This document shows, piece by piece, positions 9,474 to 63,772 of a stretch of 64,000 nt of DNA. Positions within the stretch are counted from its first letter, which is position 1, and the number at the start of each line of letters is the position of its first letter. The notes beneath the pieces were generated by a model, which did not search any database, was not told the DNA's origin, and saw only the letters and a list, made by a program, of their open reading frames with translations. The position numbers and the translations under genes were made by a program. The stretch spans positions 62,001 to 126,000 of IMG/VR virus record IMGVR_UViG_3300032770_000002; one strand, written 5' to 3'.

Positions 9474-10316
9474 GTGAACGCAAGATTGGTTATTGACGAG
9501 CACTGCGGCTTCTGTCCGGACGACCGTGTGGGTGACACTGTTTTGGAGAAGTGTCCAAAGTGCCACTCAAAGACGATCTTCAAAGGGCACAGCGGCAAGG
9601 CCTCAAAGTTTGAGTGCCCGAAATGCGGGCATAAGTTTCAAAAGGAACTAGCAAGTCACAAAGAAGCACACGAGTCATTGTTGACTGAGTTCGGAAATGT
9701 GCAGGCATGTCGACAATGCCGTATTACTTTTCCACACTACAGTAATAAGCATGGTCCGATTACACGATGTCCAGATTGTGGAAGCACTGATTTAGTTCAA
9801 TCTTCTGAGTTTTCGTCCTTACCGCCACATTCCAGAGAATATAACTGGAGCCAGACTCTTTATGGCCCATATCCAAAATCTGGTGAGCAGCTTCCAAAAC
9901 CTATTCAAAAACTATCTGATAATCCGTATAATTTAGCGCCAGACATCATTGCAGGACTACGTCGGAGTGCGGGGCTTAAGGAGACCCAGTTACTGGAGCG
10001 TAACTGGAGGTTTGGCCTGGACATCGACCTTGGGTCTCCTGAGTTTGAGGACGTTGACCCGGGTGAGGCTCGCCGGCTTGTCGTTGAGAGGCTTAGGCGC
10101 AAGATGAATGACGTGTCCAAGCTGGAAGCCTACGCGAAGAGCCAATACGAGGACATCATCGACGAGTTTGAGATGCTCAACGACGAGGCCGATGAGGATG
10201 AGTTCAACTACGTCATGCAGCGGCTCTATGACTGGGCCGACGACAATGAGATTTGGGTCGGAACTTTGACAAAAGGAACTGGTCCGAAAAGCGAGCAGGG
10301 CACGATTGAACTGTGA
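9474..10316 (+). CDS. Multi-module Zn-ribbon protein with shared N-terminal leader (MNARLVIDE)
   Basis: Five CxxC pairs (CGFC, CPKC, CPKC, CRQC, CPDC) and an acidic C-terminal domain ending LYDWADDNEIWV. Confidence 0.7.
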   Translation: MNARLVIDEHCGFCPDDRVGDTVLEKCPKCHSKTIFKGHSGKASKFECPKCGHKFQKELASHKEAHESLLTEFGNVQACRQCRITFPHYSNKHGPITRCPDCGSTDLVQSSEFSSLPPHSREYNWSQTLYGPYPKSGEQLPKPIQKLSDNPYNLAPDIIAGLRRSAGLKETQLLERNWRFGLDIDLGSPEFEDVDPGEARRLVVERLRRKMNDVSKLEAYAKSQYEDIIDEFEMLNDEADEDEFNYVMQRLYDWADDNEIWVGTLTKGTGPKSEQGTIEL

Positions 10317-10735
10317 GGGCCCGTGACGTCATTGATGAAGTTCACGACCACGCGCTTGGCGAGGTCCTCGTCCCATTCACGGCTGATGACCTGATAGAGA
10401 TCAGCCAGCTCGTTCACGACCTCATGGCCGACAGTGCTTACTACATCAGTGACCTGATGGCTAGTCAATATCGCCTGAAGTTCACCCTTGACGACGTGAA
10501 CTACCAGCGTGAACGGGTAAAATACTCGCTTGAAACAGGGCACGAGCTTCCGCCACTGTTTGGAGTCGTTGGGGCTTTCTCGTGGGCGCTTCTTAAGACC
10601 GACAAAGGGTGGACGTCAGCCGTCCTCGGACCAACTTCGGCTACTATTCCTCGGGATTCAACTTATCACCGTGACTTGCGCAGAGCTTTTCTCGATTTTG
10701 TCAATCACCAAGATTCCATAGACTTAAGCCAATGA
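10313..10735 (+). CDS. Leader-bearing hypothetical (MRARDVIDE)
   Basis: GTGA overlap with upstream stop; shared leader. Confidence 0.7.
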   Translation: MRARDVIDEVHDHALGEVLVPFTADDLIEISQLVHDLMADSAYYISDLMASQYRLKFTLDDVNYQRERVKYSLETGHELPPLFGVVGAFSWALLKTDKGWTSAVLGPTSATIPRDSTYHRDLRRAFLDFVNHQDSIDLSQ

Positions 10736-10920
10736 AGGCTCGTGAACTCATTGACCACCTGACGCACACGTCCGTTCGCACGTTGCGGCGTGACTTGTTC
10801 GCCAAGACACTGGGTGATTTGGCCATTGAAAAACGAAGCCAGAAGGACAGAGATCGTGAGCGAGTTTGGCGGGCCATCTCAACTGGACAGCGGCAACTAC
10901 GATATCGACGGCGCCACTAG
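10732..10920 (+). CDS. Leader-bearing small protein (MKARELIDHL)
   Basis: Similar to 26238..26456 (IDHL...LRxLxxxLFA). Confidence 0.65.
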   Translation: MKARELIDHLTHTSVRTLRRDLFAKTLGDLAIEKRSQKDRDRERVWRAISTGQRQLRYRRRH

Positions 10921-11435
10921 ACAGGCGGCGGGCGGTGCAGTTTAAGCGCTCTCTTCAGCCAACCATCCTTGATCCATATCGTCTCCAAGACTCCGGTCTG
11001 CCACAACTGAGCCGGCGCGATCTCGTCAGCATCCACGCGGCTATTGAAGGGTTCGATGCCACCGCCACGAAGATAGAGTGTCACGATGCTTGAACAGATG
11101 CGGCTCGCCTTTCGATGTTTGGACCACGGGTTGAAGAAGCGCTCAAGGGCTGAAATTTCATAGGGCGTTCCGAGAAACGGCCTGATGGCTTCATGCCCGT
11201 TTTTGACGTTAAATGAGTGCGGACGCCTGATGCACACGAGGTGCTTGTCGACGCGAGCTGAGTAGATGTTGACCCCGTTAATCCGGGCGGCAACGACGTC
11301 GTCATCACGCCAAACTGACTCAACGTGAGCGAGCCACGTCCACGTCTTGATGGCGATGAGAAGTCCGACTAGTTCACTCGGGGAGTAGAAGAGAACGTCA
11401 CCCGGTAGGAGGTCAGGAATGTCCGCTATTTCCAT
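10917..11435 (-). CDS. Permuted papain-like amidase (YiiX/YaeF-type NlpC/P60)
   Basis: LLPGDVLFY, AHVE (His before Cys), LGTPY, ICSSIV. Confidence 0.8.
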   Translation of the reverse strand: MEIADIPDLLPGDVLFYSPSELVGLLIAIKTWTWLAHVESVWRDDDVVAARINGVNIYSARVDKHLVCIRRPHSFNVKNGHEAIRPFLGTPYEISALERFFNPWSKHRKASRICSSIVTLYLRGGGIEPFNSRVDADEIAPAQLWQTGVLETIWIKDGWLKRALKLHRPPPV

Positions 11436-16253: not shown

Positions 16254-16324
16254 ATGCGTTTTGGCGTATTGGTTGCCTGGTCTCTAGAACATGACAACCT
16301 GCGCGGGTTCAGCGAGATGTGACT

Positions 16325-26237: not shown

Positions 26238-26456
26238 ATGGACGCCCGAGCGACGATTGACCACCTCATTGAGCAGGACCACTTGCGCTCCCTGCAGAAG
26301 AGCCTCTTTGCCCGGGCCATGCGTCTCTTTGATGACGGTTACACCCCCGACGAGATCTTCCAAGTCGTCAAGAAAACTGACGGACAGTTACCGGCTCACT
26401 TTGTCGACACGGTCAAGTCCGCGTGGCAGGAATATCGAAGGCGCGGGTTCGCATGA
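26238..26456 (+). CDS. Leader-bearing small protein (MDARATIDHLIE)
   Basis: Shared leader; similar to 10732..10920. Confidence 0.7.
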   Translation: MDARATIDHLIEQDHLRSLQKSLFARAMRLFDDGYTPDEIFQVVKKTDGQLPAHFVDTVKSAWQEYRRRGFA

Positions 26457-27535
26457 GGGCCAGAGACTCCATTGACGTCCTCTTCGAGTCGATTGAGGGT
26501 CTTGGCTCACGCAAGGTTGGGATTGAGCTTGAGATTCTCGTCCTCAGCAAATTCAAGCGTCAGTTTCAACAGCTTGCCAGAAGCTTGGACATTGGCGTTG
26601 GCTCAGACTTTTCAATGGAAAAGCGGCACGAAGGGTTTGAGCAATTTTATGGGACGGTCGAAATTGACATCGGCCGACGCCCATGGACTGAGATCGAGGG
26701 CCGACTGACTCAACTGACAAGTTGGCTGCGCCACGAGGTGCCAATAAAATTCAAGTCGCAAGCAAGGCCGCGAGTTCCAGCGCGAGAGCATGAAATTCAC
26801 CTTCCAATTGGTCGCGTCTCGCAGACCATGACCGGCGCGTTGCACATTCACTTTGACATCGATGATTGGTTTCGTGACCACGACCACTTTCGCTCGTTTT
26901 TGGCCGTGTTCAACGAGTTCCTCGACCGCGGCGACCTCGAGTCGATGGTGGCCAAGTCGCGCTACGCCGTTGCGCCAAAGAAGTCCAAGTTCGACACCTC
27001 GAGCCCATATGGACAGGGACACGAGTATGCCAAGCCTTGGCCAGCTCCAGTTCCAAGGCCAACTGACGTAAAGCGATTTCAGAACCTTCCATCCGACGAG
27101 CTGACGACGATGTCTGCCGGGTCCAAGACCGTTCGGCGCAAGTTGACGTTTGACACGTCTCGCGTGCGTGACTTTGTCCGGTGGTGGGCCAAGGAGATGG
27201 ATGTGGACCGGCTTCAGGCGGTAAATCTGCTGTCGTCATGGGACCACGGCACGCTGGAGTTTCGATTCCCAAACGCGACGCTCAGCATCAGCGCAATTTC
27301 AGGGTGGGTGGAATTTCTGGCTGGTCTCATCAACTTTAGCCGCGACAAGAATTACGGCCAGTTTTTGTGGGCCTCACGGCGAGGTGAACACAAGACAATC
27401 GGTCAGTTCATGGACAAGCGCAAGGCGGCCCATGGGCACCCACAGTTTCCGCCGCCGTGGGACAGGTATGACTACGAGGTGCCAAGGTCTTATCGGAAAT
27501 TGGGCCTCGAGTCATTGCAGCCGCTGTCAATGTAA
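26453..27535 (+). CDS. Putative amidoligase (Amidoligase_2, GS fold) with leader MRARDSIDVLFE
   Basis: VGIELE, GTVEI, GALHIHF, HGTLEFRF. Confidence 0.8.
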   Translation: MRARDSIDVLFESIEGLGSRKVGIELEILVLSKFKRQFQQLARSLDIGVGSDFSMEKRHEGFEQFYGTVEIDIGRRPWTEIEGRLTQLTSWLRHEVPIKFKSQARPRVPAREHEIHLPIGRVSQTMTGALHIHFDIDDWFRDHDHFRSFLAVFNEFLDRGDLESMVAKSRYAVAPKKSKFDTSSPYGQGHEYAKPWPAPVPRPTDVKRFQNLPSDELTTMSAGSKTVRRKLTFDTSRVRDFVRWWAKEMDVDRLQAVNLLSSWDHGTLEFRFPNATLSISAISGWVEFLAGLINFSRDKNYGQFLWASRRGEHKTIGQFMDKRKAAHGHPQFPPPWDRYDYEVPRSYRKLGLESLQPLSM

Positions 27536-39141: not shown

Positions 39142-39760
39142 CGACGTGAATGACCAGGAGCTGCTCGTCCGGGCTCACCGGCTCGTGCTCGCCCGTGGGA
39201 TGGGCGAACAGATTCCGGCGAACGACCCAGTCCTTGCCCAGCTAACTCAAGCCGTCATTCAGTGGATGGATGAAATACAGGTCCCGGCCAGTGAGCGAAT
39301 GCGCTATCTCTACTTCGCGATTTTAAACAACACATCCGAGCACATTCGAGCGCGATTGAGCCGCAACCCACTCGAAGTCGTCTTTTACGAACTGCTACGA
39401 ACAAACCTATCGTTGCTGTGGACGGCTTATGCTAAACAAGCCGACTTTCACGAGCAGCGCAGGCTGTGGCGCAGCGCGATGCACAAGATCGCCTCAGTCA
39501 AGCGGAGTGGGTGGCAGGTGTGGCATTGTTCGCCGCGGTATCGCGACGACTCACGTATGAGCGCCAGTAGTGATGACTGCGTGGCCGTCATCCACCCGGC
39601 TTTCTTCCCATTCATTCAAACATGTCAAGGCGCTGAGCAGGTCACTGATGAGCGAGCAAGCAACATCATGGAGCCTGACGCTGGCGAATTAGAAGGACCG
39701 GATGAACCGCCATTTAACGAGACAGGTGACGTGGCTGGTGGTTATCTTGATGACGAATGA
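39119..39760 (+). CDS. Leader-bearing hypothetical (MKARQLIDD)
   Basis: GTG 39119 in frame with the ORF-track call. Confidence 0.7.
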   Translation: MKARQLIDDVNDQELLVRAHRLVLARGMGEQIPANDPVLAQLTQAVIQWMDEIQVPASERMRYLYFAILNNTSEHIRARLSRNPLEVVFYELLRTNLSLLWTAYAKQADFHEQRRLWRSAMHKIASVKRSGWQVWHCSPRYRDDSRMSASSDDCVAVIHPAFFPFIQTCQGAEQVTDERASNIMEPDAGELEGPDEPPFNETGDVAGGYLDDE

Positions 39761-40521
39761 CAGCACGAGCTAAAATTGACGAGATGGCCGAATACATGAT
39801 GGGCCAGCATAGTGAGCGCCAGAAGGCCAGGCGAAAGGTCTCCGTTGGCAAGGTTCGGCTTACCTTGGGCAAGGGGAGGTTCGGAAAGCCAGAACAGGCC
39901 ACGAAGTGGGAGCTTCGTTTCACCATTTATGGGAAGAATTACTCGATCAAGTCCTATGAAGCCTCCGGCCACTTGCCAGCATCGATAGTTCGACGCTACG
40001 GCCTTGAGGTTGGCACCGCCATAGACCCAGCGCCGGCTTACGGCCCGGCGATTGACTACCCCACGCTTAATTTTGGCGGTTGGAACAAGAATTCAACTGT
40101 CAACTCCGTCATGGACGAGATCGCCGCTGATCCAGGCAAGGGCGACGTCCTTCGGTTCTTTATTGAGCGCATCGTCCCGCTCATCAAGCAGACCGTTGAC
40201 ACGTTCAGCGTTGAGGATGACCTGCCAAAGGTCTTCATGGGAAAGGGCTCAAGGGCCGACTTGCGGTTCACCGCCCGCGGCCGCGGCTTTCGCCTCGCCT
40301 TGAACAAGTATCGCTTTACGCGTGCGGGTCCTGGCGCTCAGCTTGAGCGGTTTGTCCAAGTCGCCCGCAAGCCTGAAGACGTCCTCGCCAAGGTGGAGAT
40401 TGCCGACCAAGGGTTTCCGAGCACCTTCTGGGTCCTGCTCAACCCTGAGGAGCTTGACAGCTTTAAGGTTGACATTCAACGAAACGCGCGTGAACACGTT
40501 GGAGGCATCCTCGGCCGATGA
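39757..40521 (+). CDS. Leader-bearing protein, paralog family A (MTARAKIDE-MAEY...WVLLNPEE)
   Basis: Shared N- and C-terminal motifs with 40518, 46972 and 48577. Confidence 0.75.
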   Translation: MTARAKIDEMAEYMMGQHSERQKARRKVSVGKVRLTLGKGRFGKPEQATKWELRFTIYGKNYSIKSYEASGHLPASIVRRYGLEVGTAIDPAPAYGPAIDYPTLNFGGWNKNSTVNSVMDEIAADPGKGDVLRFFIERIVPLIKQTVDTFSVEDDLPKVFMGKGSRADLRFTARGRGFRLALNKYRFTRAGPGAQLERFVQVARKPEDVLAKVEIADQGFPSTFWVLLNPEELDSFKVDIQRNAREHVGGILGR

Positions 40522-41330
40522 ATGCACGAAACTTCATAGATTTTGTTTACAAATCACGGATTTGTGGTATGATCCGTGAGATGGCCGAGTATCGCATGCC
40601 TGACGAGCCAAAACACGTGATCACCGTGTCGACCGGCGTAAAGATTGGCGATGAGTATCTCTCACTTCGCCACTCGCGTGGCTGGTCTAATTTGTCGTGG
40701 CGCACTACAGGTCCTGCAAACGCGCAAAACATCTCCGTTTTCGCTAATTCTAGCGTGCAACTGTCTGATCGGCGTGAGCGGTCGTTTCAGGTTATTCGCC
40801 CGCCTTCGACTGAGTTTGCCACGGCTCTTCGCGAGCTCTTGCAAAAATTTTTCACAGCCCGAGGCCGTGGGATCTCACGTTTTTCATTTCCGTGGTCAAG
40901 GCACCTTAAGGCATTGAACACCAAGTTTCCAAATGCCCTCGATGACGTGAAGGCCGAGGCCTACGAAAAGGCCGAGGCGTGGGTGGCGGAAAATGAGTTT
41001 CCAAGCCATGAGCTAGAGCCAGTTGAAAAGATCGAGCTTCCAGAGCCAGTTGATGACAACCCTGAGAGGTTTTGGCCTTATCTCGCGCCGCTCATTCAAG
41101 ACATTCGCTTCATCACCCACACTAATGAAAAGAAAATTGCGGCCTTTCTCAAGTTAAAAGGGCCTGACGATGACGTTGTCCGAGTTGACATAGGCTTTCA
41201 CGAGGTTTACTTCTTGGTCAACCCCGAGGAGCGTGAGATGCTCAGGCGCGCCATCACCTTGGCGCTTCGCAAGTTCATCGAAGAGGTCGGACTTGGCCAG
41301 CGTGAAGAGGAGAACGATGAGGTCCGATGA
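40518..41330 (+). CDS. Leader-bearing protein, paralog family A, with internal early promoter
   Basis: MNARNFID-FVYKSRICGMIR-EMAEY...YFLVNPEE. Confidence 0.75.
   Translation: MNARNFIDFVYKSRICGMIREMAEYRMPDEPKHVITVSTGVKIGDEYLSLRHSRGWSNLSWRTTGPANAQNISVFANSSVQLSDRRERSFQVIRPPSTEFATALRELLQKFFTARGRGISRFSFPWSRHLKALNTKFPNALDDVKAEAYEKAEAWVAENEFPSHELEPVEKIELPEPVDDNPERFWPYLAPLIQDIRFITHTNEKKIAAFLKLKGPDDDVVRVDIGFHEVYFLVNPEEREMLRRAITLALRKFIEEVGLGQREEENDEVR
40541..40573 (+). promoter_or_regulatory. Early promoter embedded in frame in a CDS leader
   Basis: TTTTGTTTACAAATCACGG (identical to 17761-79), 16 bp spacer, TGTGG-TATGAT 40568-73; ATG 40581 lies 7 nt downstream. Confidence 0.78.
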
Positions 41331-41695
41331 TGCGAGCCAAGCACCTCATCGACGAGATCAATCGTGACAAGGTAGTCATGCTTCAACGGTTGGGGGCCGG
41401 GCTTAGTGTTTGTGATGAGCCGCCGTGGTTTGGCCAGATAACTTCCATCAAGTCTGGTGTCTTAGGCATCGAGCTTGACGACTGCGCCAACTTGCTTGAC
41501 CACTGGTGGCTGCACCACGCCACATTTAGCCCAAGCACAATCGGTGAGTCTGGCGTCTACGTGTCCAAGAGCTGGCATCATGGGAGCGTGGAAGAGGACA
41601 TTCGCCAGAATTTCAAAAACGGAATGCCAATCTCATTCTGGCTTGTCAAGTTCAACGCCTCGCGTGACAAGGTCAACTTCTTTCTCAACCAATGA
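41330..41695 (+). CDS. Leader-bearing hypothetical (MRAKHLIDE)
   Basis: Shared leader. Confidence 0.7.
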   Translation: MRAKHLIDEINRDKVVMLQRLGAGLSVCDEPPWFGQITSIKSGVLGIELDDCANLLDHWWLHHATFSPSTIGESGVYVSKSWHHGSVEEDIRQNFKNGMPISFWLVKFNASRDKVNFFLNQ

Positions 41696-42042: not shown

Positions 42043-42597
42043 ATGAGCGACTCAGTCAAGCGCATCTTGGGCGAGGCGAATTACACGCGCCTTGGCATGG
42101 CTTCATTCGTCAACAAGGTCAACGGCGTGTTGAAGCAGCTTGACGGGCTTAACGACGAGCACGTCAAGCAAGCTGCCAATGACCTGCGCCAAGCGATGGG
42201 ACGATACGTCGTCAGCCAAAACCTTGAAGGAAAAGAGGAAGGGCATCGATTTACGCCGCATGAACTCCAGGTGGCCACGATGGCCGCGACCGGGTCAAAG
42301 AACTGGGTAATTTCCGCTAACGCGGCGATGATAACAATGGAGTATGATGATGTCATCAATGCCCTCAGTGACTCTGGAGTTTACGCCGATGAGGAGGACG
42401 TCGACTTCATCATCTTGGCGAATAGACCACAAGACATCCTCATCACCACGGCCACCGTCCCAGGGACAATTTTAGTCCTGACAGTCAACAAAGGTGACTC
42501 CGTGTCGGACTACTTCATCGCGGCCGACCTCGAGTCCTACAAGGCCCAGCTTCAAGACACGATAGCGGAGCTCACGCAAAATTTGGAAACTGACTGA
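42043..42597 (+). CDS. Hypothetical with leader-like start (MSDSVKRILGE)
   Basis: 184 aa; two modules split by QNLE. Confidence 0.6.
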   Translation: MSDSVKRILGEANYTRLGMASFVNKVNGVLKQLDGLNDEHVKQAANDLRQAMGRYVVSQNLEGKEEGHRFTPHELQVATMAATGSKNWVISANAAMITMEYDDVINALSDSGVYADEEDVDFIILANRPQDILITTATVPGTILVLTVNKGDSVSDYFIAADLESYKAQLQDTIAELTQNLETD

Positions 42598-42610: not shown

Positions 42611-44719
42611 ATGATCCCACTCAAGACATTCAAGGAAGGCATGATGATGCGGCTCTTACCGCGCGTCATCAGCCAAGCGGACAAGCGGGGGCAAATTGAG
42701 GCCGCCATCTCGGGTTTCCAGGACCGCATTGAGCAGCTCCGAGCCCTCGTCGACGGCTACCAGTCGCTGATCGACCCAACGATCGACCAGGGGCGCACCC
42801 CAAACGCCATCATCGTCACCTTTACCTCGAGCTTTGGGAAGACCGTTCGCCGCTCCCTGTGGCTCACCCCATACCTTGACACGGTCGCCACGCTCCTCGG
42901 TTACCAGAACGTGGACAAGGCGCCATTGCTGGCGTGGGCCGAGAGCCTGTTAGGGCTCAACACGGGGCAGGTGACCGACGTCGCCCTCGGGCATGACCAA
43001 GCCATGGCGCCACTGCAGTCGACGGCGCGCCTCCTCGCGAAGACCCTCGGCGTGATGGAGCTGCCTGACTCCACGCCTGACTCAACGGTCCGCCTCCTCG
43101 CCCGAGACCAGCTCCAGTATGCGCAGGCCAAGGGCACCCCTCGGGCGCTGAGCCAGAGGCTGTTTGCGCTCGGCTTCCAGGACGCCATCTTGAGCCCGCT
43201 CTGGTGCAGGTTGGCAGTCCGTGGGGACAATTCTCTGCTTCCTAGGGAAGCAGTGGTCGCCGGCGCAGAGTTGGACCGGCGCCCAACGGCCGACCAAGTT
43301 CCAGAGGACGCAACCTACGACATCACGGCTCTCCGGGACGGCGTGTTCTCACTGTGGAGCCAGACCTGCTCACTCCAAGACTCAACGCAAGCTTATACAA
43401 GCGTCAACGGCGACTCCCCGTTCGTCCAGGTCGCGCTCCTCGGCAATTCCAATCCAAACTATCGCGGCGAGTTCTCCACGCGCGAGCAATACGGCCTGGG
43501 CGACGTGGCGACACTGTCCGGCTCAACATACCTGGCGACGGCATACCCGCCAGGAACCCCCGGCGCCGACAACTCCGGCTGGACTCGAATCAAACAACCT
43601 GCAGCTGAAGCAGTCCCAGAGGACCAGCCGGTTGAATACACGCTTGCAGGCGGAACCCCTTCGGAAGAAGCAACCGCCGAGCTGCTGGATGAGGACGGCA
43701 ATGCAACGGGCATCACGCTGTCGGCCATTGCGCCTGGAACGGCCTTCAACGGCCTGCGCGTCAAGCTGTCGGCGTGGTCGCTTAACAACCTCTCCACGCT
43801 GCCGAGCGTCACGTCGGCCCAGCGCGTCAGCATGGGGTCGTATGGGCCAGGCACTTTTAGGCTGTCCTATGTCGGCGGCGCGTGGCAATACTACCCGAAC
43901 CGGTGGGTCGTCACCAAGCAGCCGACCGGTTCGCCGGGTTGGTTCATCACATTTTACGCCGGCAGCGTTGCGAATGCGGTCAACCTGCCAGAGCCAGACA
44001 CGACGAGCGGCTACTCCAGTTTGGCTGACGCAAAGGCTCACGTGCGTGACGCGTCGGTCACCTTCGATCACCCTGGTGGTGAGATCTGGTTCGAGTTCAC
44101 TGACGTGGTTGACGGGTATGCCAACAACGCGGTAGGAATGCCAATGCCGACCTTCAAGCTTGAGGACTTCTCACCTGAGCGCCGGAGCCTGACGGTGTTT
44201 GACCGGTTGAGCAAGGTCAAGTTTCGGTCGAGTAACTTTGACGCGCTGGCGGCACCAGCAGCAATACCCGTTGAGCCAATCCAACCGAACGAGCTGCTGC
44301 GTGACAACCCGACCTTGATTCCAGGCTACACGGCTGTCGCGCCTTACCGGCCATTTGGCGGCGCCAGTTTTACCCAGGTCGATGCGACGGCCGTCCAGCT
44401 GGCAGACGACAAGCTGTCTGACGAAGACGCGCTGGTGAACTCGGTCATTGAGGACTGGCGGCCGGCAACTAGGACTCCAAGAAGGAGCGGCATTGCCATC
44501 CCAATCGTTGATGAAGAACGGATTGCACCATATGACATGAGCGAGATCCTGTTCACGACGAACGGTGAGACTGAGGTCTTTTCTGGGACGTCGACCGACC
44601 CGCTTCCACCGAAGTTTATCGACTCACTGAGCGGGGTGTCACTCGACATCGTTGACTTGGCAACGGAAGACCTAGCCATTTTCATCACGGAAGACGGTAA
44701 GATTCTGATCACCGAATGA
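42611..44719 (+). CDS. Probable tail/baseplate protein with carbohydrate-binding-like insert
   Basis: YAQAKGTPRAL segment as in baseplate/tail P2_I-type proteins; QYGLGDVATLSGSTYLA...SGW resembles CBM5/12. Confidence 0.55.
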   Translation: MIPLKTFKEGMMMRLLPRVISQADKRGQIEAAISGFQDRIEQLRALVDGYQSLIDPTIDQGRTPNAIIVTFTSSFGKTVRRSLWLTPYLDTVATLLGYQNVDKAPLLAWAESLLGLNTGQVTDVALGHDQAMAPLQSTARLLAKTLGVMELPDSTPDSTVRLLARDQLQYAQAKGTPRALSQRLFALGFQDAILSPLWCRLAVRGDNSLLPREAVVAGAELDRRPTADQVPEDATYDITALRDGVFSLWSQTCSLQDSTQAYTSVNGDSPFVQVALLGNSNPNYRGEFSTREQYGLGDVATLSGSTYLATAYPPGTPGADNSGWTRIKQPAAEAVPEDQPVEYTLAGGTPSEEATAELLDEDGNATGITLSAIAPGTAFNGLRVKLSAWSLNNLSTLPSVTSAQRVSMGSYGPGTFRLSYVGGAWQYYPNRWVVTKQPTGSPGWFITFYAGSVANAVNLPEPDTTSGYSSLADAKAHVRDASVTFDHPGGEIWFEFTDVVDGYANNAVGMPMPTFKLEDFSPERRSLTVFDRLSKVKFRSSNFDALAAPAAIPVEPIQPNELLRDNPTLIPGYTAVAPYRPFGGASFTQVDATAVQLADDKLSDEDALVNSVIEDWRPATRTPRRSGIAIPIVDEERIAPYDMSEILFTTNGETEVFSGTSTDPLPPKFIDSLSGVSLDIVDLATEDLAIFITEDGKILITE

Positions 44720-44943
44720 TACGCCTTTACAAGTTTAACCTGACCAACCAGGTCAAGGTCACGTGTGAGCGGCCCGAGATCTCGGTTGTCAAGGCTTTAG
44801 TGGCATTTAACTGTGGCCGCCACATCTTAAGCGGCTGGGTCAATGGGCTTGAGACAGCGCTCTTCAGGTTTGACGATTCAAGCGACACCGAAAAGTTTAT
44901 GAACCAGCTATCAGCAAGGTGCGACGTCCTGCGTCTTAATTGA
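44716..44943 (+). CDS. Small protein, paralog family B
   Basis: ALVAFNCGRHILSG...FRFDD..D...F..QLSARC. Confidence 0.6.
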   Translation: MIRLYKFNLTNQVKVTCERPEISVVKALVAFNCGRHILSGWVNGLETALFRFDDSSDTEKFMNQLSARCDVLRLN

Positions 44944-44945: not shown

Positions 44946-45437
44946 ATGAAAGCACGCGACGTCATTGAGCAGTCAATTCGGTGGTCCAAGCCTAATCCGG
45001 TCATCACGGTTGTTCCGATGGAACCAGAGGAGGTGGAACTTGTCGCGTCACTGGCCAATCGACGAGTCAAGCGAGTCGATAGCCTCTTCTTTTGGGATGA
45101 GGCCATCGGGTCTCATTTGATTGTTGGCGACCAACAATTTAAAATCATCCACTCACAGGATTATCTGCGAAGAAAGTTCAAAAATGTCTTGAACACTGGG
45201 CACGGTGGAGAGAATTTAGGATTTGGCCGGCAAACGTTTCTTACCTCTCAGCCGCCTGGTCCAGGTCAATTCCAAGAGCTTAACCCTGGGATTTACATCA
45301 TGGTGTTCAAGACTGAACAGGGTTGGGTTGTGCTTCGAAAAGTTTCAGGGTTGGATGACGTGCAGTCTTACGGCCATCCTATTCCGGACTTGAAGCAAGC
45401 AATCGACGTGTTTCTCAGCCTGTTGAAGAACCCGTAA
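44946..45437 (+). CDS. Leader-bearing hypothetical (MKARDVIEQ)
   Basis: ATG 44946. Confidence 0.7.
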   Translation: MKARDVIEQSIRWSKPNPVITVVPMEPEEVELVASLANRRVKRVDSLFFWDEAIGSHLIVGDQQFKIIHSQDYLRRKFKNVLNTGHGGENLGFGRQTFLTSQPPGPGQFQELNPGIYIMVFKTEQGWVVLRKVSGLDDVQSYGHPIPDLKQAIDVFLSLLKNP

Positions 45438-45453: not shown

Positions 45454-46221
45454 ATGAAGGCCCACCACATCATTGAGATGGCCATGCGCAAGGCGCGCAA
45501 GGTCAAGTATCATGCCATTGACAGCACGGACGTTGGTGGCCGAGGAAACTATGGCACCAGCGAGTATGATACGGTTCACGCCGACCAAGTCTTGAAGCTG
45601 TTGAAGAAGATTGACTGGAGCCGAGGACCAGCCGCTGAACTCTTGGCCTATGCGGCTAGGGTCGCCAAGGGTTGGCGTGACAACCCGCGAAAACCAGATG
45701 ACGATGACATGGTCACACCTAAGCTGCGGCGTGAGTTCAGCCAGTTAACGATGAACTTGGAGGGTTCACACATTCTCGGCCTCGCTCTCCACCCGGCGAT
45801 GGTCTACAAGATTGGGCGCGGCGGAGCCTTGCATCCAAATCAATGTTTTGGCCACGCCCGTGACGAGGCTAAATCTTCCGGCTCGGACGTCGTCGTTGGA
45901 CTCTTGGTCGACCAGAACAGTCTGCCATACAAGTTCAAGAAATCTCTCGTCCCGCTCATTGGCGGTGACCGTTACCCGGAAGACCCAGACTGGGTTGTCC
46001 ACGCGTGGAACCAAAAAGACGGCAAGATGTATGACGTCACGCGGAGCGGCGGCTACGCTTACTACCCGGGCCGAATTATCCCGGCGGCTGAAGCCGTCGG
46101 CATGACTGAGATGGGGATAGCTCAGGCGGCGTGGCAGTTTAGCACCGCGTGTGAGATGGCCGTTGACACGTATCGCAGGACGCCGGAGTTTCAAGCCATT
46201 TTACGAAAGGCCATGGAGTGA
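45454..46221 (+). CDS. Leader-bearing hypothetical (MKAHHIIE-MAM); C..HA W..D putative catalytic-like residues
   Basis: ATG 45454; QCFGHA, VVHAWN, YDVT. Confidence 0.7.
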   Translation: MKAHHIIEMAMRKARKVKYHAIDSTDVGGRGNYGTSEYDTVHADQVLKLLKKIDWSRGPAAELLAYAARVAKGWRDNPRKPDDDDMVTPKLRREFSQLTMNLEGSHILGLALHPAMVYKIGRGGALHPNQCFGHARDEAKSSGSDVVVGLLVDQNSLPYKFKKSLVPLIGGDRYPEDPDWVVHAWNQKDGKMYDVTRSGGYAYYPGRIIPAAEAVGMTEMGIAQAAWQFSTACEMAVDTYRRTPEFQAILRKAME

Positions 46222-46610
46222 AAGCTAGGCGGGTCATCGACGAGGACCGTAGCCCGATCCAAGCTTGGTTTCGGGTAAAGGCAAGCGAAGCTTTGAAAGG
46301 GAATGAGTTGTCCTTTACGGAAGTCCTTGAGTGGATCATGACCTACGACTCAAATCCTGACTTATATCTCGAAGAGCCGTCACGCGATCTAATGGTCGCG
46401 TGGGAGTTTATCAAAAACAACATTCGGAGCCACGTCAGTGAACCGTGTGACAGCGAGGAGTTGGCCAAATTTGCGGCGTGGTCACACTCTTGGCTGGGCA
46501 CCGGATATGACATCTTTACCTGTGCTTTTGGCGAGGACGTGGCGGCATTCGCAATCAACCCAGCGCTCAGCCCACTTTTTAAGGCTGAAGGACTTCATCA
46601 GGCCACGTGA
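46218..46610 (+). CDS. Leader-bearing hypothetical (MKARRVIDE)
   Basis: GTGA coupled. Confidence 0.7.
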   Translation: MKARRVIDEDRSPIQAWFRVKASEALKGNELSFTEVLEWIMTYDSNPDLYLEEPSRDLMVAWEFIKNNIRSHVSEPCDSEELAKFAAWSHSWLGTGYDIFTCAFGEDVAAFAINPALSPLFKAEGLHQAT

Positions 46611-46975
46611 AAGCTGTAGCGCGCGTCATCGACAAGTTCAAGCGTTGGATTAAGTCGCACAAGCTTGGTGAACCTTATGTCGTGACCACGAGCTACGTCC
46701 ACGACATGCCACTTCTCCCGGGCGTTTATCATCGATACATGATTTCTGGCGGCGATTTTCCACTGGACATGCGGACTGACTTCTGTCAGGTCGATGATAA
46801 GGTTGACTCGCTCATTCACTCACTGGCCACGCTTAACGGCGGAAGTTACCTCAAGAGCGGTATGATTAACCACGACCGCCTCATCGTCTTTACGTTCGAT
46901 GACCTCGCCGACGTGGACAACTTCAAGCTTCAACTGGACCGACGGGCACCGAAGGTCGTGGTTAGGGTGAAATGA
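46607..46975 (+). CDS. Leader-bearing protein, paralog family B (MKAVARVID)
   Basis: SLATLNGGSYLKSG...FTFDD..D...F..QL.RR.P. Confidence 0.7.
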   Translation: MKAVARVIDKFKRWIKSHKLGEPYVVTTSYVHDMPLLPGVYHRYMISGGDFPLDMRTDFCQVDDKVDSLIHSLATLNGGSYLKSGMINHDRLIVFTFDDLADVDNFKLQLDRRAPKVVVRVK

Positions 46976-47805
46976 ACGCGCGCACGGTTATTGACGAGAT
47001 GGCGCAATATTATGTCGGCCCGATGCGACCTTACGACGAGACTCACGTTGAGGATGTCGAGCTGAAGTTTTATGACCGCAGGCGCTTTGACCAGAAGTGG
47101 TATTTCACAGCTACTGTTTATCACAAAGGGAAGATTTACAGGTATCGAATTAATGGCAGTCTGTCAGAGCGGCTGATCAATAAAGTGAAGACAGTGTCAT
47201 CGCGGACGTGGAAAGGCTTTGAAGATAAGATTCAATTAAACCCACTCCTTTGGAAGCTTTACACCGAGAATATCAAGCCGCAGTTTACAGCGGCGCTTAA
47301 TGACGTGAATGCGCACTTGTCGCTTCACCCAGAACGCCGGTTCGACGGCTTCAAGTTTATAGGGATGCCACATAACAGGGACAAGCCAATTGAGTCGTAT
47401 CAATTTCTTGGGCCATCCGTCAGGTTGACACCAAGGAAGCCAGACGAGGTGTTGACCTACCCATGGCTAACTCGCAAGGAGCTAATCGATTTCCTTGACG
47501 TTGAAGGTTTTCGCTATATAGACACCATTAGCCAATACGGTATCGAAATGTCAACTCGACGTGGCCGCGAGATTGGAGCAAAAGATCCACAACATCGTTT
47601 GGCTACCTTCCTTAACAAGCTTGAAAGACCGGGTGATTCACTTTTAACAATCAAATCCTCGCAAAGTGTGGGAGAGCTTTGTTGGGTCCTGATGAATCCT
47701 GAGGAGCGTAAGCGGTTTGGCCTTGAAATTAAGAGAATGGCCCGTAACAGAGTTAAAGATCTGTTGAGTCATGAAGATAATCCAGATTTAGACTTAGAAT
47801 ATTGA
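46972..47805 (+). CDS. Leader-bearing protein, paralog family A (MNARTVIDE-MAQY)
   Basis: Closely similar to 48577..49392 (YY.GP..PYDE.H.E..ELK.YDR...QKWYF). Confidence 0.78.
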   Translation: MNARTVIDEMAQYYVGPMRPYDETHVEDVELKFYDRRRFDQKWYFTATVYHKGKIYRYRINGSLSERLINKVKTVSSRTWKGFEDKIQLNPLLWKLYTENIKPQFTAALNDVNAHLSLHPERRFDGFKFIGMPHNRDKPIESYQFLGPSVRLTPRKPDEVLTYPWLTRKELIDFLDVEGFRYIDTISQYGIEMSTRRGREIGAKDPQHRLATFLNKLERPGDSLLTIKSSQSVGELCWVLMNPEERKRFGLEIKRMARNRVKDLLSHEDNPDLDLEY

Positions 47806-48079: not shown

Positions 48080-48577
48080 ATGTCATATAAGCAAAAACAA
48101 GCGTGTAGACGACGAATGGTTCGGTTGTGGAAAGATCAAAATTGGCGTAAGAAGATCGCCAAATCTACGAAACGTCAATGGTCCAACCCTGATTTTGCAT
48201 CACGCGTAAGAAACCCGATGGTGTTTTTCAACTATCTTCGCAGTAATTACAGATGCGGAGCGGCCAGACGAAATCTTCCGTTTGAATTAACCCCTGAACA
48301 AATAGCCGAGATAGTGATTCGTCCGTGTTTCTATTGCGGTTCCATGCCGGAAAAGTCAAAGTGGGCCGTCTTTATTGAACGTGGTCGAGCAGTCTACAGG
48401 CGATTTAGCGTTGTTCCGGATCATCACGGGATTGATCGTGTTGAAAATTCAAAGGGTTACACTCTCGACAATGTTGTAAGTTGTTGCAGTATTTGTAACG
48501 TCGCTAAAAGAACGATGTCGAAAGATGCATTCTTAGAGTGGGCAAAAAGATTGGCCCATCATCAAGGTTGGATTTAA
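48080..48577 (+). mobile_element. Free-standing HNH (His-Me) endonuclease
   Basis: CFYCG...GIDRVENSKGYTLDNVVSCCSICNVAK; AT-richer than its flanks. Confidence 0.85.
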
Positions 48578-49392
48578 TGGACTCACGCCAAACTATTGAT
48601 AGGATTTTTGAGATGGCGCGATACTACATCGGCCCGATCAAGCCGTATGACGAGATTCACCTTGAAAACGCTGAGCTGAAGTATTACGACCGCAAGCGTG
48701 GGCCACAGAAGTGGTATTTTCGGGTCAATGTCCTCTATCAAGGGCGGGTCTTTGAATATAGGAATTGGGGAGACCTTGCGAAGCGCCACACGAGTAGCAT
48801 TGATTGGGAGAAGCGGCGTGAGCTGAAGCAGACCAACCAGCCGAAGGCCATCTTCTCAATGTCTTCAATGACGTTGAAGAAGTGGGAGGAAAAGGCCGCC
48901 AAGAACCCAGACGTCTGGAAGCTCTACACCGAGACCATCAAGCCGCACCTCGACAAGTCACTTGAGGACTTTGAGAAGATGTCTGGCAAGCCAACGATTC
49001 AGCCCGACCAATTTCTTTCAGGAACTGCTAACCGGCAAGACGACGACACGTGGGCCGATCCAGAGCGTTGGAGAAGAGCGGCGAATCCGCGCGATTTTTC
49101 ATGGCTGTCGAACGATCAGTTTCGACAGGTTCTCGATGATGAGGGCATTCGCTACATGCAGGACATCGCCGAATATGGTGTGGAACGCTACGCCAAGTAT
49201 TGGCAAATGGACGATTGGAAGCGTGTGGCGGTGTTTATCGACAAGCTGATGAAGCCAGACGACAAGTTGTTCGACATCAGAACGGCTCAGCGTCACCACG
49301 ACTACGTCCTGATGAACCCAGAGGAGCAGGAGCGGTTTGAAGCGCGCATTCAACGGCTGGCCCGCCAGAATGTCAGCGGCATGCTCTCATGA
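48577..49392 (+). CDS. Leader-bearing protein, paralog family A (MDSRQTIDRIFE-MARY)
   Basis: TAATG overlap with the HNH stop; YVLMNPEE. Confidence 0.78.
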   Translation: MDSRQTIDRIFEMARYYIGPIKPYDEIHLENAELKYYDRKRGPQKWYFRVNVLYQGRVFEYRNWGDLAKRHTSSIDWEKRRELKQTNQPKAIFSMSSMTLKKWEEKAAKNPDVWKLYTETIKPHLDKSLEDFEKMSGKPTIQPDQFLSGTANRQDDDTWADPERWRRAANPRDFSWLSNDQFRQVLDDEGIRYMQDIAEYGVERYAKYWQMDDWKRVAVFIDKLMKPDDKLFDIRTAQRHHDYVLMNPEEQERFEARIQRLARQNVSGMLS

Positions 49393-49700
49393 AAGCGCGT
49401 GACATCGTTGATGATGGCTTCAAGAAGCTTCGGCGTTTTTACATGGAGGTGGGTTTTCCAGCCGACTCAGACGACCTAATCGGACCTACTGTTCACGCCA
49501 TTGCGGCGTTAAATGGTGGCCAGCACATGGCTTCTGGCTTCAGTAACAAACGAAGACACATTGTCTTCGTGTTTGACAGCGAACCTGACGCCAATTCGTT
49601 TCAAGAGCAAGTTCACAAGCGGTGTCCATCCGTCGATTTCTATGGGCGCGGCGGCATGCTTCCGACGCGTTTTTCATTGCCATTTCATGACTCCCCGTGA
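49389..49700 (+). CDS. Leader-bearing protein, paralog family B (MKARDIVDD)
   Basis: AIAALNGGQHMASG...FVFDS..D...F..QV.KRCP. Confidence 0.72.
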   Translation: MKARDIVDDGFKKLRRFYMEVGFPADSDDLIGPTVHAIAALNGGQHMASGFSNKRRHIVFVFDSEPDANSFQEQVHKRCPSVDFYGRGGMLPTRFSLPFHDSP

Positions 49701-50034
49701 CGTCATTGAGTTGCTGAACTTGGACTCGCGGTTCGTGGTTGTCTACACGCCAGGGTCGGAGAGGTCGGGTGGGTCAGATAGCATTGCGACAGTTCTGATT
49801 GGACTTTCAGCCATGAACGACGGCTATTTTTGGGCCGGCTCATTCTCTAGCTTAAACAAAGAACGGGCGTTCCTGTTTGAATTTAAAGACCCTAACGACG
49901 CCTTGAACTTCAAGAAGCAGGTCTTGTCACGCTGTCCAGACGCTGACGTGGTAACCCGGCCGTTCTGCGGCTTGGCTCCGACCACGTTCAGGGAGAAGCA
50001 GGTTCAGTCGATCGTCGTGCGAAAATCAGGGTGA
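49687..50034 (+). CDS. Leader-bearing protein, paralog family B (MTPRDVIE)
   Basis: LSAMNDGY...FEFKD..DA..F..QV.SRCP. Confidence 0.7.
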   Translation: MTPRDVIELLNLDSRFVVVYTPGSERSGGSDSIATVLIGLSAMNDGYFWAGSFSSLNKERAFLFEFKDPNDALNFKKQVLSRCPDADVVTRPFCGLAPTTFREKQVQSIVVRKSG

Positions 50035-62485: not shown

Positions 62486-62767
62486 ATGAGCACTGGCATC
62501 AGTCGGATTCTCGAGTCGAAGGACAACACCAAGCGTGTCGGGCGTGACCTCGTCGACGCGCTAAACAAGCTGAAGGAGTGCGTCCGAGTTCAGCTCGTTG
62601 ACAACCAAGAAGAAGAGGTGGAGGGCCGCGAGCTTGCCATTGGCCGGCGCATCCTCGAAATCTGTGGTGGCACAATGTCCCACAAGGAAGTGGCTGAAAT
62701 TCGAGAACTGGCCCAAGAGCTCGTCAACATTCACTCGCCCACCGGTCCTGAACCGGTTCTTCAATGA
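62486..62767 (+). CDS. Hypothetical with leader-like start (MSTGISRILE)
   Basis: 93 aa. Confidence 0.6.
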   Translation: MSTGISRILESKDNTKRVGRDLVDALNKLKECVRVQLVDNQEEEVEGRELAIGRRILEICGGTMSHKEVAEIRELAQELVNIHSPTGPEPVLQ

Positions 62768-62768
62768 C

Positions 62769-63134
62769 GTGAGACATTCTCGTGGTTTAAACTCTGATCG
62801 ATATCGTCAATATAGCAAACAATGGAATTTAAGAAACAAGGAATATGGCAGCAACTGGCGACGTGAACGGCGAGCGGCCAATAGAAAATTTCTCTTTGAA
62901 TATCTTAAAACTCATCCGTGCGTAGATTGCGGTGAGGACGACTTTGTTGTCTTAGATTTTGACCATGTATACGGAAAGAAGACCGTTGGCTGGAATCAGC
63001 TTATGCCAGGAAGTCGCTTCAGGCTTTTGCAAGAGATTCAAAAATGTGAAGTTCGATGTGCAAATTGTCATCGACGTAGACACTATCGAGAAAAATCAAG
63101 AGGAGCTAGATTTCGAGGATTGGTGCCTATTTAA
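62769..63134 (+). mobile_element. Free-standing HNH endonuclease
   Basis: HPCVDCGE...LDFDHV...EIQKCEVRCANCHRRRH; AT-rich; GTG 62769. Confidence 0.85.
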
Positions 63135-63772
63135 TGACCCGCAACCCGCATAACGCCATCAAGCGACTCGTCGAAGGGCCGGCTGAACTGACGAAGTATT
63201 CTTCGGTCAGGACGGAGCTTGACTTCGCCCTCGGTGAAATCCGTGACAAGATCACCACGCTGCTCAAGCTGCCTGTCAGCCAAGACCTGAAGGACGCCGC
63301 AAAGCTCTTCATCCAGCACCTTGAGCGCTATACCGTCAAGCGGTCGCTCGACCAAGACTCCGAATTGAGGACGGCGACAAAATTCTCATCGTCAAAGGCC
63401 GCCGGACGGGTTTACTCCTCGGCGGTGATCTTGCAGGCCATCAAGAAAGCCACTGGCAAGCGAAATTGGAGACAAGTTGAGGATGACGAGGAGTATGAGG
63501 CGGAGATGGTCGGTGAGACGATTGCCCACCTCTATGACGACTATGGCATCGAGGTCACGACGCAGGAACTCGTTCACATGGCCTTCGAGCGTGAGACTGA
63601 CAATCGCAGCGCTTTGGCCTACGTCTCAGTCTGGCTATTTCCTGGCGGCATCTACATTCAAGACCTTGCCACAGACCGCGTCAGCGGCTACGACAGCATT
63701 GTGAAGACGCCGCGCGAACTTGAGAAGGAGATTCGTCACTTTAGTGCCTATGATGGAGATGATTGGGAATGA
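63134..63772 (+). CDS. Hypothetical with leader-like start (MTRNPHNAIKRLVE)
   Basis: TAATG overlap with the HNH stop. Confidence 0.65.
   Translation: MTRNPHNAIKRLVEGPAELTKYSSVRTELDFALGEIRDKITTLLKLPVSQDLKDAAKLFIQHLERYTVKRSLDQDSELRTATKFSSSKAAGRVYSSAVILQAIKKATGKRNWRQVEDDEEYEAEMVGETIAHLYDDYGIEVTTQELVHMAFERETDNRSALAYVSVWLFPGGIYIQDLATDRVSGYDSIVKTPRELEKEIRHFSAYDGDDWE

Follow-up and report, generated by a model that had tools for sequence, protein, structure and literature searches.

What is the function of a short N-terminal peptide that recurs on many mostly unrelated proteins of one uncultured phage? The peptide was first seen in a window of 64,000 nucleotides (positions 62,001 to 126,000 of IMG/VR record IMGVR_UViG_3300032770_000002), which lies in a 230-kb metagenomic contig, of which 88% was recovered for the present analysis. 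An initial annotation, made from the sequence alone, listed the leader on about 19 proteins and proposed that it is a capsid-targeting signal, removed by a protease, that loads at least 20 proteins into the head as a possible anti-defence or host-takeover arsenal. The observation itself is confirmed, and the set is larger than first described. All 19 listed coordinates are start codons (13 ATG, 6 GTG) of ORFs of 62-360 aa with the N-termini given (Table 1). The strict pattern.AR..ID was found 10 times in the six frames of the window, in each case directly after ATG or GTG on the + strand. A looser pattern gave 95 hits, 19 of which followed a start codon, 18 of them on the + strand.

A genome-wide comparison of N-termini had been suggested in advance as a check on the motif. 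Our scan, done without a pre-set motif over 213 called N-termini, showed enrichment of K at position 2 (p=5e-15), A at 3 (8e-6), R at 4 (2e-6), I at 7 (1e-12) and D at 8 (5e-6). A position weight matrix trained on 16 leaders from the window was then used to search 202 kb. Scores of at least 14 were found at 26 start codons, where 1.7 were expected, and at 3 other codons; two of these three are leaders offset by one or two residues after the Met, and the third is an in-frame internal Met. The JGI gene calls, which were made independently, use the same start for 12 of 15 leader genes between 37 and 50 kb and for 2 of 2 at 9.4-10.7 kb.

We considered whether the motif could be a nucleotide-level or translation initiation signal, such as a downstream box for mRNAs without a Shine-Dalgarno sequence, or an artefact of start-codon choice or chance. 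Most genes here do lack a Shine-Dalgarno sequence, and codon 2 often begins with A because of ATGA/GTGA start-stop overlaps. However, codons at the conserved positions vary synonymously (GCA/GCC/GCT/GCG; CGN and AGR for Arg; ATT/ATC/ATA; GAC/GAT), the 40 nt upstream do not align, and conservation extends to residues 7-12. In all of IMG/VR, only this contig has more than one match to a degenerate DNA form of the leader. The signal is therefore in the peptide and not in the DNA, selection acts on the peptide, and with the agreement of the independent gene calls and the concentration of matches at start codons this reading is already disfavoured and very unlikely.

The leader is not confined to the window; about 21 more leader genes lie elsewhere on the contig, giving about 40 in the portion recovered, or roughly 13% of the genes seen. 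The initial annotation held the proteins to be unrelated, with bodies that mostly do not align with each other. When the first 34 leader genes were compared by BLAST with their first 15 residues removed, they fell into 23 clusters, so that only the 9-12 residues are shared, with no extension into the bodies. Paralogue families do exist: family A with 9 members, family B with 3 members plus 1 leaderless, a repeat family of 3, and one pair. The cases in which the acidic residue is followed directly by Met-Ala, which had been read as a leader added to an older start codon, are mostly family A paralogues and so are not independent events. The motif had also been described as absent from recognisable replication, glycosylation and early genes, but one recognisable enzyme, an Amidoligase_2 protein, does carry it. 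Other recognisable bodies include zinc-ribbon proteins; an NTP-transferase-like and a DMP19-like body are only below-threshold hints.

Table 1. Leader genes, loose variants, leaderless paralogues and the portal gene in the window. A caret follows the Glu of the putative cut site.
Coordinates	Strand	Feature	Length (aa)	N-terminus	Observations
70..1329	+	T4-type portal, C-terminal part			Pfam Portal_T4; places the phage among those with T4-type heads
5407..6033	+	Loose variant	208	MESKAVIAE^S	
9474..10316	+	Leader gene	280	MNARLVIDE^H	Zinc-ribbon-rich body; TAGTTA motif at 9464-9469
10313..10735	+	Leader gene	140	MRARDVIDE^V	GTG start overlapping the upstream stop
10732..10920	+	Leader gene	62	MKARELIDHL	No early Glu site; N-terminal 30 aa resemble those of 26238 and 39119
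26238..26456	+	Leader gene, 12-residue class	72	MDARATIDHLIE^Q	Four orthologues in other samples keep A-R/E..I/V-D/N.L.E; TAGTTA motif at 26226-26231
26453..27535	+	Leader gene, Amidoligase_2 enzyme	360	MRARDSIDVLFE^S	Orthologues keep the leader (MMTARELIDE; TTG-NSRSFIDWLFE); model shows the leader as a detached low-confidence helix
33288..33647	+	Leader gene, gapped variant	119	MSRAKAIVE^E	
37347..37832	+	Leader gene	161	MKSRSLIDALVF	GTG start; no early Glu site; JGI calls a later start
38080..39141	+	Amidoligase paralogue without the leader			24% identical to 26453
39119..39760	+	Leader gene	213	MKARQLIDDV	Asp, not Glu, at position 9
39757..40521	+	Leader gene, family A	254	MTARAKIDE^MAEY	
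40518..41330	+	Leader gene, family A	270	…MIRE^MAEY	Leader followed by a 12-aa insert; Glu again directly before MAEY
41330..41695	+	Leader gene	121	M(M)RAKHLIDE^I	
42043..42597	+	Loose variant	184	MSDSVKRILGE^A	Same K/R-R-I/L-L-(G)-E type conserved on the gene upstream of the sheath gene in two phages
44716..44943	+	Family B paralogue without the leader	75		
44946..45437	+	Leader gene	163	MKARDVIE^Q	A paralogue lies outside the window (contig 176918)
45454..46221	+	Leader gene	255	MKAHHIIE^MAM	
46218..46610	+	Leader gene	130	MKARRVIDE^D	
46607..46975	+	Leader gene, gapped variant, family B	122	MKAVARVIDK	
46972..47805	+	Leader gene, family A	277	MNARTVIDE^MAQY	In the model, helix 3-15 is followed by a low-confidence linker
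48577..49392	+	Leader gene, family A, 12-residue class	271	MDSRQTIDRIFE^MARY	
49389..49700	+	Leader gene, family B	103	MKARDIVDDG	No Glu site
49687..50034	+	Leader gene, family B	115	MTPRDVIE^L	JGI calls an earlier start
62486..62767	+	Loose variant	93	MSTGISRILE^S	TAGTTA motif at 62474-62479
63134..63772	+	Loose variant	212	MTRNPHNAIKRLVE^G	

The leader comes in a 9-residue form (…I-D-E) and a 12-residue form (…I-D-x-φ-φ-E, where φ is hydrophobic), both of which end in hydrophobic-x-Glu, the type of site cut by the T4 gp21 protease. Of 34 leaders, 23 have [LIVMF]-x-E ending at residue 7-14, against 30 of 179 other genes (odds ratio 10, p=7e-9); 11 of 34 have no such site within 14 residues. 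Among the leaders without an early Glu, 10 of 21 have φ-x-E at residues 11-14, against 17 of 179 (p=5e-5), so that a Glu at position 12 appears where Glu9 is missing. In family A the Glu stays directly before M-A/P-x-Y even where 3 or 12 residues are inserted. The helical hydrophobic moment of residues 2-12 is 0.51, against 0.30 for other genes (p=2e-11), and AlphaFold models of two unrelated bodies show the leader as a low-confidence helix (residues 3-11 and 3-15) with a coil before the first confident strand. The leader does not resemble a Sec, Tat or lipoprotein signal peptide: it lacks a hydrophobic core of 7 or more residues after a basic N-region, being charged and amphipathic (K/R, D, E) with only two or three hydrophobic residues.

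The leader is also modular. Of five amidoligase paralogues in this genome, only one has it, and one member of family B lacks it. The family A member at contig position 206867 starts MPEYVLGKK, exactly where its paralogue at 12935 continues after …LLCE^MPRYVLGKK, and a stop lies 5 codons upstream of that start. In relatives the leader is conserved. Amidoligase orthologues at 45-50% identity keep it, all four orthologues of the 72-aa gene keep …L-φ-E, and a syntenic phage contig at 55% identity has VTARQLIDQLFE upstream of the 580-aa gene. Of 32 non-self family A homologues, 14 start with the leader, and proteins of two or three units carry it at every unit junction, which is what a processing site would look like.

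These observations bear on the possibility that the peptide is inherited or recombined family sequence with no common function, being the first helix of one expanded family (family A and its derivatives) that reached other bodies by descent, gene fusion or mosaic recombination. The existence of paralogue families, the conservation of the leader plus E^M-P/A-x-Y across family A in many metagenomes and in tandem repeats, and the relatedness of most E-Met-Ala cases agree with this view; in family A the leader could simply be the first helix of the domain, which would also explain its presence at repeat junctions. Against it, the bodies do not form a single homologous family by BLAST, although remote homology among the orphan bodies is not excluded, and they include a Pfam enzyme family in which most paralogues in this genome lack the leader. 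Furthermore, the leader is kept under purifying selection in orthologues while the adjacent linker diverges. We consider this explanation unlikely.

Identification of a prohead protease had been named beforehand as a check of the capsid-targeting interpretation, and one was found. The genome encodes a gp21-family protease (Pfam Peptidase_S77, 59.6 bits against a cut-off of 27) fused to a helical tail of about 400 aa, and a gp23-type capsid protein (84.7 bits) with about 90 N-terminal residues before the start of the Pfam model, which carry several φ-x-E sites. A gp20-type portal is also present. The presence of a protease raises the possibility that the peptide is a processing signal only, cut by the S77 protease or another Glu-specific protease to mature polyproteins or activate zymogen-like precursors, without directing packaging. 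The motif at every junction of multi-unit family A proteins, an in-frame internal copy in a 479-aa gene, and the Glu-site statistics fit this reading. However, the most conserved positions (A3, R4, I7, D8) lie upstream of the minimal φ-x-E site and are not needed for a gp21-type cut, and in T4 such upstream residues carry the targeting function. In addition, gp21-family proteases act inside proheads, and removal of 9-12 residues from single-unit proteins has no obvious purpose unless those residues did something first. This explanation also appears unlikely.

The arrangement of the genes gives some support to another view. Leader genes lie largely in long arrays of small, same-strand ORFs with overlapping start and stop codons (62% against 29% for other genes), an early-like layout; in other phages such arrays are typically early genes. 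The peptide might thus be a docking or sorting helix unrelated to the capsid, which binds one hub, such as a host protein, a phage chaperone or a tubulin-organised site in the cell, and marks a fast-diversifying set of host-takeover proteins that act in the cytoplasm and are not packaged. The very large set, the third of leaders without a Glu site, and the presence of genes for a tubulin homologue and a GroES-like protein are compatible with this. It does not explain the compensating Glu at position 12, the Glu kept before the family A body despite insertions, or the paralogue that starts exactly after the Glu, and no candidate hub or import system was identified. We regard it as unlikely, though less so than the other alternatives.

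The best explanation, which we hold to be somewhat more likely than not, is that the leader is a prohead-targeting propeptide of the T4 capsid targeting sequence (CTS) type. In this model, residues 2-8 (basic/polar, A, R/K, x, hydrophobic, I, D) would form a short amphipathic helix that binds the assembling scaffold core, so that the tagged protein is enclosed when the gp23-type shell closes. The gp21-family serine protease would then cut after the Glu of the terminal hydrophobic-x-Glu (position 8-9, or 12-13 in the longer class), and the mature protein would be released inside the head and leave with the DNA at infection. Leaders without the Glu would be packaged but not trimmed, as described for the T4 CTS with Asp at position 10. 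In favour of this model, the candidate start-site motif TAGTTA precedes leader operons, the portal operon and a tape-measure-like gene, which suggests co-regulation. The interpretation offered in the initial annotation is thus partly supported: each sequence-level prediction that we could examine came out as predicted. Our analysis demonstrates the peptide, its position at gene starts, its conservation as protein, its modularity, the Glu-site pattern and the presence of a T4-type protease, capsid protein and portal, whereas scaffold binding, packaging, cleavage and injection are inferences. The phage is known only from a metagenome, and neither the presence of trimmed proteins in virions nor the sufficiency of the tag for entry into the prohead was assayed. 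The proposed anti-defence role, likewise not examined experimentally, has only two below-threshold hints in its favour, a Lar-like zinc ribbon and DMP19. Several features fit the model less well: 11 of 34 leaders have no φ-x-E within 14 residues, many leader genes sit in the early-like arrays, the tagged proteins are far more numerous than any known CTS set, they total over 7000 residues per single copy of each, and their bodies are not biased toward basic, DNA-binding proteins (median pI 6.2).

In its broadest form, which is possible but somewhat less likely than not, a lineage of uncultured phages with T4-type heads uses one modular tag of 9-12 residues to load about an eighth of its proteome into the capsid for co-injection, including enzymes, DNA-binding proteins and multi-unit polyproteins that are cut apart inside the head. 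This would be the largest sequence-defined packaged-cargo set known, and a ready-made portable packaging tag. A less likely but stranger alternative is that the tag addresses proteins to a so far unknown intracellular destination or timed-destruction pathway of the phage. If the tag works as proposed, the packaged and injected protein set of an uncultured giant phage can be read directly from its genome, which for other giant phages takes virion mass spectrometry. It would show that the T4 targeting principle is old and widespread among phages with T4-type heads and can scale from a few proteins to dozens, would give about 40 orphan proteins a common biological context, first contact with the host, and would offer a second, independent short tag for loading foreign proteins into phage heads.

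The closest known system is the CTS of the T4 internal proteins IPI, IPII and IPIII and of Alt. T4 internal proteins are diverse and share only the CTS (PMC3012670). In the 10-residue T4 CTS, residues 4 and 7 are used for targeting and residues 8 and 10 are needed for processing, while Asp10 blocks cutting but not targeting (PMC9026906). Cuts of the gp21 type include ITE-6 in Alt and LIE-9 in gp21 itself. As in T4, a short amphipathic N-terminal peptide is shared by otherwise unrelated proteins (10-19 aa is the range for peptides of this type) and ends in hydrophobic-x-Glu with the same I-x-E spacing, and the cargo genes are polymorphic between related phages. The sequence differs, however, and is one residue shorter; the likeness is one of pattern only (M-K … φ-I-x-E), and nine residues are too few to infer common descent, so that the question of homology is left undecided. 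The present phage further differs in having a second, 12-residue class, about 40 cargo genes instead of a handful, with enzymes of 360-480 aa and paralogue families among them, a protease fused to a long helical, scaffold-like tail, and relatives that include multi-unit proteins with the tag at internal junctions. The giant phages phiKZ, 201phi2-1 and SPN3US also package dozens of proteins, many in paralogue families, that are processed after Glu by a protease distantly related to gp21, and two SPN3US paralogues share an identical N-terminal 15 residues that contain a cut site (PMC5694885). Those sites have a small residue at P3 (A/S/G-x-E; PMC5694885), while P3 here is I, L, V or F in nearly all leaders; those propeptides are often long and not one common tag, and the protease found here hits Peptidase_S77, the T4 type, whereas the phiKZ/SPN3US type is an S80 protease. 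In encapsulins, a short terminal cargo-loading peptide is likewise sufficient to direct diverse cargo into an HK97-fold shell and is modular across cargo families, but these peptides are usually C-terminal, bind the shell rather than a scaffold and are not removed by a protease, and the cargo is not delivered to another cell.

The window (positions 62001-126000) belongs to the virus record IMGVR_UViG_3300032770_000002, which is JGI contig Ga0335085_10000140 (230,253 bp). By walking along this contig we recovered positions 2935-155376 and 157972-207795, 202 kb or 88% of it; the census of leader genes does not cover the missing 12% (1-2934, 155377-157971 and 207796-230253). Nucleotide and protein searches against 50,697 deposited phage genomes gave no DNA match and no match for a family A protein (family A being the largest paralogue family among the leader genes), the 569-aa protein or the 380-aa protein. 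Only the portal hit Flavobacterium and Microcystis phages, at 24-26% identity. When IMG/VR and metagenomes were searched for relatives with the helicase, the amidoligase and the 580-aa protein, only the source contig, one 27-kb relative and three short fragments were found. Most genes of the phage lack an upstream Shine-Dalgarno sequence; the capsid gene is an exception, with AAGGAA 7 nt before its ATG. This suggests a host or phage in which initiation is largely independent of Shine-Dalgarno pairing.

The shared N-terminal leader described in the initial annotation is real: all 19 of the positions listed there are start codons of genes with the N-terminal peptides reported. The strict pattern x-A-R-x-x-I-D occurs 10 times in the six frames of the window, each time directly after ATG or GTG on the + strand. 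The conserved residues use different synonymous codons, including both CGN and AGR for Arg, and the upstream DNA does not align; selection therefore acts on the peptide. An examination of N-termini beyond the original set had been put forward in advance as a test of the motif. Over all 213 called N-termini, with no motif assumed, A3, R4, I7 and D8 are enriched (p from 1e-5 to 1e-12). A weight matrix trained only on leaders from the window found 26 sites at start codons, where 1.7 were expected, against 3 at other codons, and it recovered new leader genes outside the window. A degenerate DNA form of the leader, scanned over all IMG/VR as a control, matched 82 stretches, and only this contig matched more than once. 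A DNA or RNA motif was rejected because the codons vary, and a gene-calling artefact because the independent JGI gene calls agree with the leader start in 14 of 17 cases checked; we consider a nucleotide-level signal or artefact very improbable. A text search of the literature for six leader strings found no paper.

Besides the 19 leaders in the window, canonical leaders were found at 21 other contig positions. In total there are about 40 leader genes, roughly 13% of the genes seen, amounting to more than 7000 residues. With the first 15 residues removed, the first 34 leader genes fall into 23 BLAST clusters; family A has 9 members. The possibility that the leader is merely inherited family sequence without a common function is regarded as doubtful. 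In PHROGs and Pfam searches almost all of the leader proteins are orphans. The few recognizable bodies are an Amidoligase_2 enzyme, zinc-ribbon proteins, one of which has a weak Lar-like hit, and a possible nucleotidyltransferase and a possible DMP19-like protein, both of which scored below threshold. The 479-aa leader gene also contains an in-frame internal Met at residue 405, followed by a full leader (MSNARKVIDEF) and a 75-aa proline-rich basic tail, which could be a nested gene, a gene fusion or an internal processing site.

The core of the leader is M, then a polar or basic residue, A/S, R/K, x, a hydrophobic residue, I and D. There are two classes: a 9-residue class that ends I-D-E, or V-I-E at position 8, and a 12-residue class that reads I-D-x-φ-φ-E. 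Of 34 leaders, 23 have hydrophobic-x-Glu ending at residues 7-14, against 30 of 179 other genes (p=7e-9). Among leaders without an early Glu, 10 of 21 have the site at residues 11-14, against 17 of 179 (p=5e-5). In family A the Glu sits directly before M-A/P-x-Y in every member that has a Glu, even where 3 or 12 residues are inserted after the core. Residues 2-12 have a high helical hydrophobic moment (0.51 against 0.30; p=2e-11). AlphaFold models of two unrelated bodies, built from shallow alignments (pLDDT 65 for family A, pTM 0.67 for the amidoligase), both place the leader in a low-confidence predicted helix, residues 3-15 and 3-11 respectively, followed by a coil before the first confident strand. 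A secretion signal was rejected, since the leader has no hydrophobic core. A Foldseek search with the family A model found nothing significant; its N-terminal beta-rich part (residues about 25-115) weakly resembles the WGR nucleic-acid-binding domain of PARP enzymes, but not significantly (E 0.08, probability 0.63). A PDB sequence search found nothing.

The leader behaves as a module. The amidoligase at window position 26453 carries it, but the paralogue at 38080 and three further amidoligase paralogues do not; of these five Amidoligase_2 paralogues in one genome, one is fused to a WGR domain. The member at 44716 of family B, a second paralogue family, also lacks it. The family A paralogue at contig 206867 begins MPEYVLGKK, exactly where the gene at contig 12935 continues (MPRYVLGKK) after its …LLCE, and a stop lies 5 codons upstream of that start. 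This supports the suggestion in the initial annotation that the leader is an add-on in front of an older start; however, the E-Met-Ala examples listed there are mostly paralogues of one family.

The leader is also found in other genomes. Amidoligase orthologues at 45-50% identity from two other samples keep it, while the linker behind it diverges. All four orthologues of the 72-aa gene at window position 26238 keep A-R/E-x-x-I/V-D/N-x-L-φ-E. A 27-kb IMG/VR contig, syntenic with contig 32-44 kb at 55% identity, has VTARQLIDQLFE on a different body at the same position, upstream of the 580-aa gene, and VNAIRRLLDE on the gene upstream of the sheath gene, where our phage has MDSIRRLLGE. The conserved 580-aa protein has a SWIM-like CxC…CxH motif and a long acidic tail rich in Gly, Glu and Ser. 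Its N-terminus ends in φ-L-E at residue 9 in both phages, and in both it is preceded by a leader gene whose body appears to differ between the two. A word-based search for family A homologues found only the query itself, and a profile search was needed to find relatives. The profile found 32 non-self homologues among 1.84 billion representative proteins, of which 14 start with the leader. Several proteins of two or three units (P0014, P0015, P0017, P0018 and P0024 in our listing, all from other metagenomes) carry A-K/R-x-x-I/V-D-x-φ-φ-x-E, followed by M/S-P-x-Y/F, at each unit junction, and look like polyproteins. That the leader is a processing signal only is thought unlikely.

Whether the phage encodes a prohead protease had likewise been named beforehand as a point to check. 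Pfam and PHROGs scans of contig 135-155 kb found neither the protease nor the capsid gene; they lie at contig 15.6-18.9 kb, outside the window. The contig encodes a Peptidase_S77 (T4 gp21 family) domain in residues 43-184 of a 606-aa protein, whose remaining 400 residues or so are helical and scaffold-like with a Q/P-rich end; in T4 the protease and the scaffold are separate proteins. Next to it is a Gp23-type capsid protein in which the Pfam model starts at residue 93, leaving an N-terminal extension with several φ-x-E sites. A T4-type portal, a gp25-type baseplate protein and a sheath protein are also present, and the portal/gp25 operon includes a protein with collagen triple-helix repeats that may be a fibre or head decoration. 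Because the phage has a tubulin-family gene (Pfam PF00091) we considered a nucleus-forming phage; markers of such phages were not searched for specifically, none turned up in the Pfam and PHROGs results, and the recovered parts of the genome gave no support for this reading.

The hexamer TAGTTA is rare, with 20 copies in 202 kb on both strands against about 71 expected from base composition. Of the 20, 14 lie 2-12 nt upstream of the start codon of an ORF. These ORFs include six leader genes, the gene heading the portal operon and a 777-aa tape-measure-like gene. The hexamer may be a promoter for leaderless or near-leaderless mRNAs, and it suggests that leader genes and structural genes are co-regulated. 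Coordinates of these and other features are listed in the table.

Coordinates of leader genes and other features. Window and contig positions are given separately; L-numbers denote individual retrieved sequence stretches, L101 being from the second phage that has the 580-aa protein.
Feature	Window	Contig	Stretch	Strand
Canonical leader, family A		12935		
Canonical leader		31788		-
Canonical leader		32458		
Canonical leader		126527		
Canonical leader		129105		
Canonical leader		131277		
Canonical leader		141230		-
Canonical leader		146979		
Canonical leader		147650		
Canonical leader, 479-aa gene with internal copy		148838-150277	L096:14587-16026	
Canonical leader		148423		
Canonical leader		151230		
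Canonical leader		152449		
Canonical leader		154606		
Canonical leader		175431		
Canonical leader		175909		
Canonical leader		176325		
Canonical leader		176918		
Canonical leader		190795		
Canonical leader		196488		-
Canonical leader		203676		-
Amidoligase_2 with leader	26453-27535			
Amidoligase_2 without leader	38080-39141			
Amidoligase_2 without leader			L050:11040-12146	
Amidoligase_2 without leader			L098:11764-13014	
Amidoligase_2 without leader			L100:1752-2780	-
Family A gene used for the model	46972-47805			
Peptidase_S77 fused to helical tail		15568-17388	L104:2867-4687	
Capsid gene			L104:4721-6172	
Tubulin-family gene		about 182.3-183.4 kb	L098:4490-5626	
580-aa protein, this phage		32693-34435	L100:8256-9998	
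580-aa protein, second phage			L101:2743-4482	
Collagen-repeat protein	2365-3513			
BubE, GIY-YIG, NADAR, a dual-specificity phosphatase, and a radical SAM/SPASM enzyme next to glycosyltransferase-like genes	50678-50953, 37832-38083, 55746-56258(-), 56262-56747(-), 52878-53849			
TAGTTA	9464-9469			
TAGTTA	26226-26231			
TAGTTA	32171-32176			
TAGTTA	62474-62479			
TAGTTA	24728-24733			-
TAGTTA		31799		-
TAGTTA		31233		-
TAGTTA		60704		
TAGTTA		142382		-
TAGTTA		175899		
TAGTTA		190782		
TAGTTA		203686		-

The best reading of these data is that the leader is a prohead-targeting tag resembling the T4 capsid targeting sequence (CTS) and removed by a protease, a reading we hold to be somewhat more likely than not. 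The interpretation offered in the initial annotation, that the leader packages proteins into the head for delivery at infection, has partial support. The peptide, its position at start codons, its modular distribution, the pattern of Glu sites and the genes for a T4-type head were observed directly in the sequence, but packaging, cleavage, injection and any anti-defence role are inferences that were not examined experimentally. A sorting or docking tag unrelated to the capsid is the strongest of the alternatives, although it too seems unlikely.

In T4, the internal proteins are diverse and share only the CTS, which loads them onto the scaffold core (PMC3012670). Within the 10-residue T4 CTS, residues 4 and 7 carry targeting and residues 8 and 10 carry processing; Asp at position 10 blocks cutting but not targeting (PMC9026906). 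Sites of the gp21 type include ITE-6 in Alt and LIE-9 in gp21 itself, while the giant phages phiKZ and SPN3US cut after Glu at A/S/G-x-E (PMC5694885). Sites of the phiKZ type were rejected for the leader, in which P3 is not a small residue. The leader has the T4 type of site, with a hydrophobic P3 and I-x-E, and the phage has a T4-type protease, but the leader sequence is different from that of T4 and the cargo set is far larger.
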